64,000 nt of DNA, taken from Octopus sinensis. Lineage: Eukaryota. Below the pieces are notes generated by a model. The model made no database searches and was not told the DNA's origin. It saw only the letters and a list, made by a program, of their open reading frames with translations. The stretch spans positions 1-64,000 of the forward strand of contig NW_021837037.1 in NCBI RefSeq assembly GCF_006345805.1, read 5' to 3'. Position 1 is the first letter of the stretch. Each line of letters begins with the position of its first letter. Position numbers and translations under genes: made by a program. Shown one piece after another: positions 31,201 to 38,199 of this stretch.

Positions 31201-34200
31201 TTATCTTAATGTAAAAGATGCAACAACAATTTAGTAAAGAACGATCATAAAAATAATGATCCCATCTATTCTAGAATGACTATAAGATGTTGTGGACATT
31301 TTGAAATAATCTTTCCTTTAAGGAAGTAAAATGGCAGCATAAGATTCACAAGTATACGCACCATCATAATCCTAAATATTGCAGTAATCGTCTACTTATA
31401 GATTCAATCAAATAATATATACTCTGATCGAAAAGAAACGTTTCGTTATATATTGACTTAATCCAGTAACTCCCATGGGAGTATTGAATGAATTGAGTAA
31501 AGAAAATTTACTTGTTAAAATTCTAGGTGATGCGAAATCCCAATTCTGTGAAAAGGCAGCCGAGAAACATTGCAAATATGCTCTGATTCGTTATCCTGTA
31601 AAGGAGCCAGATGAGAAGTACTGCAGGTATATATTCAGCTTTTACAAAAATCCTTCATAAAACCACCAATAAACTTTGCAAAGTTGCTTCACAAAATCAA
31701 TTGTTCGTAGGGTTTTACACAGAGGAGCAAATTATGTTTCGATTATTTGTAAATCTCACAACGAGAGATATTGAGCAACAGTACTTTGGAATAAGGATAT
31801 AACTTGACTGTCCTTTTTTAGGACGAATGTTGCTGTAATTAAGCCTCAGGAGGCATCGGCTCCAGTTGGCTATACGACGCGATCTGCGTCCTTGTATTTT
31901 CTAAGGGATTCGTGATACACAGATATTGTTTTTTGAGCTGAGTTTGGATGCCAGTTTCGCTTGTTCCAAAATGTAAGGAAACAGATCGTGTCGTATAGCT
32001 AGAGGGAGATGATGGCACCTGGGGTTCAATTACAACAACATTCGTCATAAACCAGGACTGCCATGTTATGTTGGCAAACAATCTTTACTCCTATGTTATG
32101 ATTGATTTGAAATGTAATCCACAAAATGCATCCCGTTTCCGGTTCTGGAAATTTTCCATCAATCTAGCAACGCCTCAAACAAAATATTATTGCATTTGTT
32201 GATAGATCGAAAATGAAAGAAAAAATTACTTGTTCCATTGGTTCAAAACCCATTTTCCCATTGCGGTTTCAACACTATTTATCCATTGATGCTATACAAT
32301 TAATTTCTATCATAGACTCATACGTTCCCTTTGCGAACTGGTCTTTATGTAAAACTATTTGTATTTCTAATTAACATCCTTTCCAGCACAAAAATTTAAA
32401 ATGGGATATTCGCACAGACGTAAAGCGACCACAGAAGGTTAATACTTCAGATATTGTAAGATAGCGGACTGGCAGAATAGTTAGTTCGCCGGTCCAAATG
32501 CTTAGCGGCTTTCCGTCCGTCTTTACCTTCACTGTTCCATATTCTGCCGTATTCGATCTTCGCTTCCGTCTTTCCAGGGTCGATAAAATATCTACCAGTG
32601 GGGCACAAGGATGATATAAATTTGAAACCAACGTCACGCATATTGTAAACTTGTACGTGCCACTTGACGCCAATTATGGTTTTCAATTCATACATTCATA
32701 TTTTGAGATAAGAAAAGAAACTCTATGGGTCATTATTTTTCTTTATAATTACCAAATCTTCAAAAACGTTTTTGTCTTGTAGACGTCTATGGTTGTTTGA
32801 AACCTGTTTTATTAATGTAGATAATCCCTGTAAAGAGATTATTCACAAAACCCGTACGGATTATTGCCCTCGTAAGTAATTTGTCGTATTATTAAACGTG
32901 TTATATGAACACAATAATTTGAAATCAAATTTTACTTTTGCTGGACTGTATTTTCAGATAACAAACCAGGCGACTCGCCATCGTACACAACTTAAGCTAT
33001 TGGCTTCAATTTAACCCAATAAGTGCCAGATGTTTTATTCATATTTTGGGTGATTGCCAGGTGTCTTACGAGTTAAAATAATACACAGTAATTAAATTTC
33101 TTTCATATGTGAATTATTTTGGAACTTATAATTCTTTCGAAACGTTCCAAATAGGGATCGCTGAAAAACAGCATATTTATCCAATTCTTTTCAATTGCAA
33201 TAATAGACATTTTAGTCGTTTTGAATCTATAGTATCGAGTGCTAATGCGTATGAAATATCAATGAATGTTATAGATAGGAAAACTAAAGAAAAACAAAAA
33301 CCATTTTCAAAACATTTTCTATTCTTGCTGTTCACAAATTGTGGTTTATAACATAAAATGTCATTTAGAATTAGCCAGAGTTAATAATGACACAATTTAA
33401 CTGCTAAATATTAATAAACGTATGCCTGCAAAGGCAATGTATATAAGCAGTTCAGCTTAAATACGAACAACCAATCGTTAGTGAAATAGTATTTAGCAGA
33501 TCCCCAAATGTGGCTCATGGCAGCCAATGGGTTTATTGAGCCTTCAGTCGCTTATCCATATATCAAAGTATTAGTTAATCGAGCACGACTGTTCGTACTG
33601 GTCACAGGCTATTCCTCTTAAATTTCTGTATTTACTAGATGAATGATATTATAGTGACGAAAGTATTTTTTCCGTCACACTGCACAATCATTAGATAAAA
33701 TTATTTTCTACATACGTTTCCATTCGGGCAATGTGAATGCTTGCCTTTTACAACGGGTCTTCATATGTGAGAGTATATTCTACGAACGGGAAGGGGGAAA
33801 TAGCAGAAACGATGTAGTAGGATAATGAATAGTTACAAGAAGCAATCTATGCAATACAACAGAATATCAAGTATAAAATCATTTTTGTAATTTATAAAAT
33901 TTGCGAGAAATAAAAGAAGGAAAATAAAGGAGTCGACATGCTTATACTTCATTCTTGGGCTCAAAACAATACTGCAGCTTCTTTCATATAGCAGTTAATA
34001 GCATTTTGGTTGGAAGTCATTTAAAATTTCTTATGGAGCGGTAAGGAAATTTTCCTTCATAATGTAGGTCTACATTGCTTTTGATTATATATATATATAT
34101 ATATATATATTTATTATGTGAAATAGAAAGATGAATAATCTTGTAGTAGATTAATCAAAAGTTTAACCGATACCTTAGTAGCAAAAATCACAGCAGTAAA

Positions 34201-37200: not shown

Positions 37201-38199
37201 TATATATATATATATATATATATGTATGTATATGTAAGGTAGGTACAATAAATTGAGGGTGAATACTTGATAAACGTACGTGCACCTGTATATGCCAGCT
37301 AATGGCAGATGTGAGAGGATATATGTATCAAATTAAATAAATAACAGGACACAAGTGTGTCGCGGTAAACATGTGTACCGCGACATCCTTTGTGTCCTGT
37401 TTTTTTATTTAATTTGATACATATATATGTATATGTATATATGTATATATATATATATATATATATATATATATATATATATATAAGCATATATATATAT
37501 ATGCATATATATATGTATGCATATATATTATATATATATATATATATATTATATATATATATATATATATCATAAATTCCAACTTATTTTTGCAGTTCAT
37601 TAACTCTACGTCAAGCTCTCTTCTGTCTGTGAGCTATTCCCCCAGGTTAGACGCAGTGCTCTGACGAAAGAAAACTATGTTTGCATTATTGGGCGAGACC
37701 ATTCTCATACTGTATATAATTTCCTGTGGGCATATGGTCTAGTTGTTAGAGCAGCGGACTCGTAGTCGAGGATCGCGGGTTCGAATCTTAGACAGGGCGA
37801 CGTGTGTATTTATGAGCGAAGCAACTAAGCTCCATGCACCTCCGGCAGAAGGTAACGGCGAAATTCTTCTGACTCTCTCGCCACAACTTTCTCTGTCTTT
37901 CCTCTTGCAGCTCACCTGCGACAGGAGCCGGTCCGTCGCAGGTGGGGAAACTATACGCCAAGGAAACCGAGAAAGCGATCCTTATGAACCAGGTAAGGCT
38001 CGAGAAGGAACAAACATATAATTTTCTAGAAAATAGCAACGATATTAATGAAATATGTCCGTCAGTTTTAAATGTATTACTGATTAACATATTTTTTGTC
38101 TTGAATTCTTCAGATGACCTGCCAGAACCCAACTCAGCACCATGCATTCTAACATTAAACAGTATCTTATTGGCTGTTCCTGTATGGGCCATATTTTAG
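25166..38199 (+). CDS. Gene B (complete copy), long form: 103-aa signal peptide + 6-Cys domain + GPI-like tail
   Basis: Exons 25166-25202, 31527-31626, 32783-32871 and 38114-38199. Translation: [103 protein letters not shown]. About 47% identical to A by manual alignment. The link from exon 3 to the distal exon is inferred. Confidence 0.72.
25767..25857 (-). ncRNA. Type I hammerhead ribozyme, intact core (copy 60063-60153)
   Basis: UUUUAG-CUGAUGA-GUACGGGACA..long stem II..UGUCAUUGUAU-GAAAC-GAUU-GUA/CUAAAA. Confidence 0.85.
26876..26966 (+). ncRNA. Type I hammerhead ribozyme copy with C3G core mutation (copy 61172-61262)
   Basis: UUUUAG-GUGAUGA-GUAC...GUAU-GAAAC-GAUU-GUA/CUAAAA. Confidence 0.8.
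27580..27960. mobile_element. Composite SINE insertion inside the inverted pLTR (27797-27960 is a minus-strand copy of the 688-850 family)
   Basis: Contains the ggccatgctggagcaccgcc tail motif and the reverse complement of the tRNA-derived SINE. Confidence 0.75.
30351..30390 (+). ncRNA. Hammerhead-like motif with atypical core (CUGAUGC); inverted copy at 27340-27379
   Basis: CCA-CUGAUGC-A-GUCAC(AGGAGU)GUGAC-GAAAG-AA-CUC-UAG. It is sense to the RT ORF, in the 3' repeat. Confidence 0.5.
31527..31626 (+). CDS. Gene B exon 2
   Basis: aaattctag|GT...TGCAG|gtatat; encodes [33 protein letters not shown]. Confidence 0.9.
32783..32871 (+). CDS. Gene B exon 3
   Basis: ttttgtcttgtag|A...CCTC|gtaagt; encodes [29 protein letters not shown]. 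Confidence 0.9.
32958..32995 (+). CDS. Gene B proximal terminal exon 4a ([12 protein letters not shown], soluble 87-aa form)
   Basis: Acceptor ttttacttttgctggactgtattttcag| after an 86-nt intron. It starts ATAACAAACC, compared with ATAAGAAGCC for A exon 4. AATAAA at 33413. Confidence 0.6.
38114..38199 (+). CDS. B-type distal terminal exon 4b (GPI-signal-like tail), copy 2
   Basis: ttttttgtcttgaattcttcag|AT; encodes [33 protein letters not shown] lies ~30 nt after the stop. Confidence 0.8.

Follow-up and report, generated by a model that had tools for sequence, protein, structure and literature searches.

An octopus tandem-array gene that probably ends in its own conserved anchor-type exon, and an old intronic block as a candidate lineage-specific terminal exon

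We analyzed the first 64,000 nucleotides (nt) of contig NW_021837037.1 of the Octopus sinensis assembly GCF_006345805.1, read on the forward strand and called here the window. It carries two paralogous genes, A and B, within a long direct repeat. An earlier sequence-only reading of the window proposed two candidate terminal exons for gene B, a proximal one (4a) without a hydrophobic tail and a distal one (4b) with such a tail, and its sequence observations were confirmed. Our results showed that 4b is the cognate, ancestral terminal exon of B, because the corresponding loci of Octopus vulgaris and Octopus bimaculoides keep the same arrangement. B is probably a tandem-array gene that ends in its own conserved 4b, with 4a an old, decayed block of intron 3 that is now a candidate lineage-specific terminal exon. 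The locus is an ordinary tandem gene family with one modest lineage-specific curiosity.

The gene models were built from translated self-comparison, signal-peptide exons with phase-1 donors, and nhmmer profiles. A and B are paralogous four-exon genes. Each encodes a protein that starts with a signal peptide, continues with a helical domain of six cysteines, and finishes in a tail resembling a glycosylphosphatidylinositol (GPI) signal. The features that define both genes and the end of B are as follows:

16057-21477, plus strand: gene A, with exon 1 at 16057-16093, exon 2 at 18660-18759, exon 3 at 20766-20854, and exon 4 at 21392-21477
25166-25202, plus strand: gene B exon 1; signal peptide, then base G and donor GTAAGA (phase 1)
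31527-31626, plus strand: gene B exon 2; first half of the six-cysteine domain, paralogous to A exon 2 at 18660-18759 (tblastn/nhmmer)
32783-32871, plus strand: gene B exon 3; second half of the domain, ending in phase 1 with last base C
32872-33196, plus strand: conserved proximal block of intron 3; an 86-nt mini-intron, the 4a open reading frame (ORF), and the next 200 nt
32955-32957, plus strand: 4a acceptor CAG; AG at 32956-32957, and C at position -3 (32955) found only in the O. sinensis window
32958-32996, plus strand: candidate proximal terminal exon 4a; H plus 11 residues, TAA at 32994-32996, hydrophobic tail absent
33091-33096, plus strand: possible 4a polyA signal ATTAAA, 97 nt past the 4a stop; not conserved in O. 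bimaculoides
38114-38199, plus strand: exon 4b; H plus 27 residues, then TAG; GPI-signal-like tail; twin at 3826-3911
38231-38236, plus strand: 4b polyA signal ATTAAA, 31 nt past the 4b stop, at the same position as the AATAAA of A exon 4 (28 nt past its stop)

The coordinates, phase, and peptides previously given for B exon 3, 4a, and 4b were all correct on checking. The first exon of B is homologous to that of A (16057-16093), with the homology extending ~200 nt upstream, and its peptide is identical in three of three O. vulgaris units. Both first exons (MKRILFILSVIC-G in A) show a basic start, a hydrophobic core, and small residues; this signal-peptide call was made by inspection of the sequence rather than with a dedicated predictor. 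B exon 2 is 100% identical to its copy in O. vulgaris unit 1, and the GTAAGT donor of exon 3 starts at 32872. Gene A has a twin in the window (exon 1 at 50347, exon 4 at 55688). The A and B+4b proteins have 103 residues each. Their alignment is gapless, with 47% of the residues identical over the full length and 50% in the tail. At the DNA level, A exon 4 and 4b (86 nt each, gapless) are 67% identical, and exons 1-3 of the two genes 60-66%. The homology between A exon 4 and 4b reaches ~80 nt into the upstream intron and ~220 nt into the 3' flank. Exon profiles revealed no further copies of exons 1-3 in the window, and no third paralogue upstream of 4b.

The coding exons outpace the neighboring introns when the window is compared with O. 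bimaculoides (exon 3, 76% identity; 4b, 79%; flanks, 83-91%). Exon 3 has 2 synonymous and 12 non-synonymous codon differences; for 4b the counts are 3 and 7, respectively. This excess of exon over intron divergence hints at diversifying selection on the family.

The tails encoded by A exon 4 and 4b share a layout, with NES (A) or NSA (4b) 22-23 residues before the C-terminus. The last 11 residues have a Kyte-Doolittle hydropathy of 2.6-2.7, and the proteins, like their orthologues, finish inside the hydrophobic stretch. With a heuristic that considers the omega/omega+2 residues, the spacer, and the hydrophobic end, and is not a trained predictor, A and B+4b have a C-terminal GPI signal and 4a does not (hydropathy -1.7). 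We infer that A and B+4b are GPI-anchored. The 4b acceptor is CAG in all copies, as are those of A exon 4, and it has the top score of the family under the crude acceptor matrix that was used for all acceptor scores.

The arrangement around 4b was found again in an O. vulgaris locus (L001) with 93-97% DNA identity to the window. It contains three complete tandem units, 92-97% identical to one another, and in each of them the order is A exons 1-4, B exons 1-3, a 4a-like ORF, a repeat-rich spacer, and 4b. A genes, B genes, and 4b exons are thus equal in number, three of each, and the locus has no orphan 4b. The array spans 1581-82740, and its ends match window positions 7230 and 7236, respectively, in the spacer between 4b and A. 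Sequence outside these ends is unrelated to the window; to the left there is just an unrelated pseudo-exon 2, and to the right no exon of the family. The pseudo-exon (239-424) resembles exon 2 of another member and carries an in-frame stop (GAAGSKVCYKVAAE, stop, CKHALQNYPFQSPDIHLCK). The junction between units 2 and 3 (55944-56272) has no equivalent of window 3932-13399, and for this reason the 4b of unit 2 lacks its 3' flank and ATTAAA.

In O. bimaculoides (locus L002), exon 3 of the one B-like unit lies at 33590-33677. It is followed directly by a 4a-like block and, ~930 nt downstream, by a 4b-like exon at 34602. The 5.2 kb that separate exon 3 from 4b in the window are due to repeats that inflated intron 3 in the O. 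sinensis lineage. Annotated models of both relatives join B-type exon 3 to 4b. LOC128249887 of O. bimaculoides (XP_052830408.1) has three domains, and all six RefSeq isoforms end in KDKCP followed by 28 residues of the 4b type. CAI9735841.1 of O. vulgaris (293 residues) chains B-type and A-type exon 2/3 units into four domains and ends in KDYCP followed by 28 residues that begin with QDLPEPNS. Word-indexed protein searches with B+4b and with A gave no matches; an exhaustive HMMER search that started from the A protein recovered 12 relatives, every one from Octopus.

Self-comparison of the window showed that 522-29703 is repeated directly at 34804-64000 with 99.925% identity, and that 1-968 also pairs with 33950-34924. 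The window holds ~1.9 periods of a ~34.3-kb direct repeat, and 29704-33949 is seen once because the window ends at 64000. The unit boundary lies here:

7230-7236, and again 41518-41524, no strand: repeat-unit boundary, matching both outer ends of the three-unit O. vulgaris array

Since the window crosses this junction twice (7233 and 41521), the O. sinensis genome has at least three units. The 34-kb "duplication" is one period of this array. A breakpoint within 29704-33949 had been considered; the array boundaries map instead to window ~7233, outside the interval between B and 4b.

Exon 3 and 4a would join in phase 1 (C/AT AAC, the slash marking the junction), and reading on past the TAA gives 25 residues, as noted before. 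The predicted exon 3-4a junction is GGATTATTGCCCTC followed by ATAACAAACCAGG, and the exon 3-4b junction GGATTATTGCCCTC followed by ATGACCTGCCAGA. The B+4a product would be a tail-less protein of 87 residues. The distance from the exon 3 donor to the 4a acceptor is 86 nt. A branch-like TTTTAC lies 25 nt upstream of the 4a AG, which is the first AG after it. The 4a acceptor scores within the range of the real acceptors of the family, and 24 of the 288 AG sites in the interval score as high or higher.

The base at position -3 of this acceptor varies. The acceptor reads GAG in the first two O. vulgaris units and in O. bimaculoides, AAG in the third O. vulgaris unit, and CAG in the window. With these four other copies to polarize the change, parsimony points to a lineage-specific G-to-C substitution at 32955 in O. 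sinensis. The ORF encodes HNKPG[P/A]SPSYTT and a stop in O. vulgaris, and DNKPGASAWYSI and a stop in O. bimaculoides.

The proximal block that contains 4a is 87-91% identical to O. bimaculoides, versus 83% for intron 2, and the homology ends at ~33196. A profile of the block matched directly after exon 3 of the O. vulgaris A-type units (E 5e-6 to 8e-5) and at the same place in two further units of O. bimaculoides (E down to 8.5e-15). All paralogue units with the block carry their own intact exon 4 further on. As it is shared with A-type and other paralogues, the block is older than the split between A and B. In gene A of the window, its position has been overwritten by a microsatellite.

The sequence-only reading had described 4a as similar to A exon 4, and as an anchor exon that lost its tail. 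The similarity was upheld when the comparison was anchored at the AG. The first 10 nt of 4a match exon 4 in the window at 8 of 10 positions (P=0.0014), and the orthologous exon 4s at 9-10 of 10, a level reached by 0 of 16,687 other AG sites. Anchored global alignment of positions +1 to +95 gave P values of 0.0007-0.011, and of 0.08-0.3 when the first 10 nt were left out, so that most of the signal sits in these 10 nt. The similarity did not hold up in unanchored local alignment (P 0.01-0.5) or with profile hidden Markov models (HMMs). The clearest homologue of the second motif of resemblance (AACTTAA..TATTGGC) lies in intron 3 of the O. vulgaris A-type genes rather than in A exon 4. For the loss of a tail, the anchored similarity is moderate support and the profile tests count against it. 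On balance, these comparisons favor 4a being an ancient, decayed copy of exon 4, that is, a pseudo-exon.

The CAI9735841.1 model starts (MKFKEEPTFAGPE, L001 10001-10040) within the homologue of the 4a block in A-type intron 3, and its donor aligns with the position of the B 4a acceptor AG.

The history we propose runs as follows. B is a four-exon member of an octopus tandem array encoding small proteins of the secretory pathway. The boundary of the array unit lies between 4b and A, placing B exons 1-3, 4a, and 4b within a single unit; with the boundary there, no chimera was formed. In the related genomes, the 4a AG has a poor base at -3 (G or A). The G-to-C change at 32955 turns it into a consensus CAG in O. 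sinensis, preceded by a good pyrimidine tract and separated by 86 nt from the donor of exon 3, which makes 4a a candidate cryptic or alternative terminal exon of this lineage. Its use would yield the tail-less 87-residue protein as a secreted form. Protein searches with the A protein and the mature B+4b sequence returned no transcript-derived products. We lean slightly against any detectable use of 4a in O. sinensis, judging from its sequence.

Several observations weigh against this account. Profile HMMs of A exon 4 and 4b fail to detect 4a. Its acceptor, pyrimidine tract, and TTTTAC equal those of the real acceptors of the family, and a site 86 nt from the donor could out-compete one that is 5.2 kb away. 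The length of the 4a ORF and its stop codon are kept in five of five copies from three species. Comparison of the window with O. bimaculoides gives 79% identity for the ORF, close to the values for exon 3 and 4b; 4a diverges like the real exons, and conservation is therefore compatible with coding use. The exon 3-4b junctions of the relatives count for little as evidence of splicing, because they come from predicted models that chain several units. Finally, given the 99.97% identity of the copies in the window, an artefact of assembly could account for part of the repeat. The argument that 4a is non-coding because it is less conserved than its flanks was dropped, since exon 3 and 4b behave alike.

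A bolder version of the proposal is tentative, and we think it rather unlikely to hold in full. The change at 32955 may have re-armed a decayed anchor exon, giving a tail-less, secreted version of an RGM/GDNF-receptor-like protein, perhaps a soluble decoy, alongside the anchored form or in its place, and exon 3 donors across the array may choose between exon 4 and the next exon 2.

The second half of this idea may also be taken separately. The exon 3 donor would often skip both 4a and 4b to reach exon 2 of the next unit, and modular, multi-domain anchored proteins would take exon 4 only at their end. This is unlikely, and it is compatible with B ending in 4b. Its basis is that the six three-domain isoforms of LOC128249887 and the four-domain CAI9735841.1 chain successive exon 2-3 units, and that phase 1 is shared by the donor of exon 3 and the acceptor of exon 2. 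Joining B exon 3 to A' exon 2 in the window also keeps the frame (DYCP-R-ATASK; junction CCCTC followed by GTGCCACAGCC). However, these are predicted models, merging of tandem paralogues is a common annotation error, and no unit lacks a promoter-proximal exon 1 or a terminal exon of its own. In both sets of models, the exon 2-3 units of consecutive genes are joined across intact copies of exon 4 and exon 1 (L002 10001-34687; L001 10001-79509). Such joins between units may be either real multi-domain splicing or annotation merger.

It is quite unlikely that the new CAG has made 4a the main or only terminal exon in O. sinensis, with B secreted and 4b a relic or a minor exon. The consensus acceptor, its good pyrimidine tract, its place as the first AG after TTTTAC, and its short distance from a strong GTAAGT donor, compared with the 5.2 kb of repeats before 4b, would all suit this. 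Against it, 4b is intact, with a CAG, the best acceptor score of the family, and a preserved tail and polyA signal. The G-to-C change is also recent, and a single copy of B is visible in the window.

A third possibility, put forward in the sequence-only reading, is an ancestral and regulated choice of last exon that switches B between a secreted form (4a) and a GPI-anchored form (4b). An AG acceptor, a stop codon, and an ATTAAA further on are present for 4a and 4b alike, and the 4a ORF and its stop persist in the five copies of the three species. The family also has predicted tail-less members, one O. bimaculoides gene (LOC128249787) has two alternative C-termini, and the 4a block is slightly better conserved than intron 2. 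We regard the ancestral switch as very unlikely nevertheless. The 4a acceptor is non-consensus in four of the five copies, 4a is used in none of the six O. bimaculoides isoforms and not in the O. vulgaris model, so that annotated models in two species use only 4b, and the ATTAAA of 4a is not conserved in O. bimaculoides. A 12-codon ORF is the chance expectation in AT-rich DNA, and AG sites that score at least as well as 4a are frequent in the interval (see above).

The two annotated C-termini of this paralogue (P0007/P0019), which come after the equivalent of exon 3, are CKG followed by QKPYNPDS and CKG followed by CSKEYIGLYKTLKKNFGRSVESVVLNFQ. Neither is hydrophobic, and the short one is loosely like 4a (xKP...P.S).

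The remaining idea, that the 34-kb duplication put the 4b of a third paralogue behind B, drew on a two-copy view that sets the duplication junction at ~29.7-34.3 kb, taking in the B-4b interval, and on the look of 4a as the decayed last exon of B itself; it is refuted by the colinear order of B exon 3, 4a, and 4b in O. bimaculoides and in each of the three diverged units of O. vulgaris, by the mapping of both O. vulgaris array ends to window ~7233, by the equal numbers of B genes and 4b exons with neither an orphan 4b nor a third set of exons 1-3, by a divergence between A exon 4 and 4b that equals that between A and B, and by the age of the 4a block, and we give it almost no chance.

We return to the array around B and its 4b. 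The window is animal DNA with TA microsatellites, tRNA-like short interspersed elements (SINEs), and retroelement remnants, and it has no N gaps. Outside the TA tracts, four substitutions and a few indels, of 1 bp or in microsatellites, are all that distinguishes the two repeat copies over 28.7 kb; copy 2 has one additional 333-bp (TA)n-SINE unit. The 99.97% identity of the window copies compares with 92-97% among the O. vulgaris units, which points to a very recent duplication, to gene conversion, or to an artefact of assembly. A 5.4-kb insertion at 8016-13399 (twin at 42304-47688) contains two long retroelement-like ORFs (8864-9967 and 9973-10986). Both window copies have it and all three O. 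vulgaris units lack it, which dates the common ancestor of the window copies to after the split between O. sinensis and O. vulgaris. A Pfam scan of the transposon-like ORFs gave no matches, and for that reason these elements are named generically here. An Rfam scan of window 29-40 kb was likewise without matches.

Beyond the 4a block, intron 3 of B is made up largely of repeats. The elements found there are listed below:

33197-38013, no strand: remainder of B intron 3; (TA)n plus tRNA-like SINE units, a palindrome, a reverse-transcriptase-like element, microsatellites, and SINEs
34270-34421 (twin at 321-472), no strand: perfect 152-nt palindrome that looks hairpin-forming or like a miniature inverted-repeat transposable element (MITE)
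~35400-37130, minus strand: degraded reverse-transcriptase-like element

A local tandem repeat at 34417-35256 consists of (TA)n plus tRNA-like SINE, and a second palindromic element of hairpin-forming or MITE-like look lies at ~37325-37420. No homology to 33197-38013 was found in O. bimaculoides, where the interval from exon 3 to the 4b-like exon is ~930 nt.

The domain encoded by exons 2 and 3 has ~60 residues and six cysteines, and is predicted to be helical. Its signature is C-x7-C-x6-YP-x3-PD-x3-C-x-RL-x5-C-x7-C-x11-C. Against Pfam RGM_N (PF06535), the B domain reached E=0.068 and 13.9 bits, below the cut-off of 24.2, and the four-domain O. vulgaris protein summed to 37.9 bits, above it. 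A profile of 21 domains searched against the PDB ranked the N-terminal domains of RGMB first (E=0.2), and UniProt names one octopus member "GDNF/GAS1 domain-containing". An AlphaFold2 model has helices at 14-33, 40-55, and 60-74 and a hydrophobic C-terminal helix, with a mean predicted local distance difference test score of only 58.7. A Foldseek search of the PDB with this low-confidence model gave nothing better than E ~4, and a literature search on the octopus family yielded nothing relevant. As far as these comparisons go, the product is most likely a small surface protein that is GPI-anchored and has a helical domain of the RGM-N/GFR-alpha type. The evidence for membership of the RGM-N or GDNF-GAS1 families is suggestive only.

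These results fix the gene model of B (exons at 25166, 31527, 32783, and 38114) and remove the chimera as a lead. They describe a previously uncharacterised family of octopus proteins that are small, evolve fast, and are probably GPI-anchored; the members share a helical domain of six cysteines, and their genes form a dynamic tandem array. If the CAG of 4a is used, B would be a clean natural case of one base turning an anchored protein into a secreted one; if 4a is unused, the locus is ordinary. If modular splicing is real, the tandem array would be a generator of surface proteins with one to several domains.

Several known systems can be set beside this locus. The RGM N-terminal and GDNF-receptor/GAS1 families are alike in having a small cysteine-rich domain with three predicted helices, a signal peptide, and a GPI-type tail, and the motif F/Y-C-x2-L-x5-C-x7-C aligns with RGMB. 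The octopus proteins differ from RGMs in lacking the vWD/GDPH part, and the multi-domain architecture of GFR-alpha is absent from the octopus genes. The closest relatives, LOC128249887 and CAI9735841.1, share with B the domain signature, the signal-peptide exon, and a 4b-type tail on a B-type exon 3. They differ in chaining three and four domains, respectively, whereas the window supports single-unit genes of 103 residues. Their loci have GAG or AAG in place of the CAG of 4a, and in O. bimaculoides intron 3 is ~930 nt instead of 5.2 kb.

Alternative last exons that switch a protein between GPI-anchored and other forms are known from NCAM (NCAM-120 versus NCAM-140/180) and acetylcholinesterase (H versus T). 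As in these genes, B has a single donor and two possible terminal exons, one of them with a GPI signal. Each of the two exons has the signals of a last exon, namely CAG, TAA, and ATTAAA at +97 for 4a, and CAG, TAG, and ATTAAA at +31 for 4b. In NCAM and acetylcholinesterase, both exons are conserved and their use is demonstrated, whereas the consensus acceptor of the candidate exon 4a occurs in one genome only. The relatives keep the consensus acceptor at 4b (CAG throughout) but not at 4a (GAG, GAG, AAG, and GAG).

A single substitution at position -3 of an AG within an intron can activate a pseudo-exon or a cryptic 3' splice site. 4a differs from such cases in that its activation is predicted and its block may be the remnant of a former exon rather than random intron. 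It is like them in that an intronic AG with a ready pyrimidine tract gained a YAG by one substitution, G to C at 32955.

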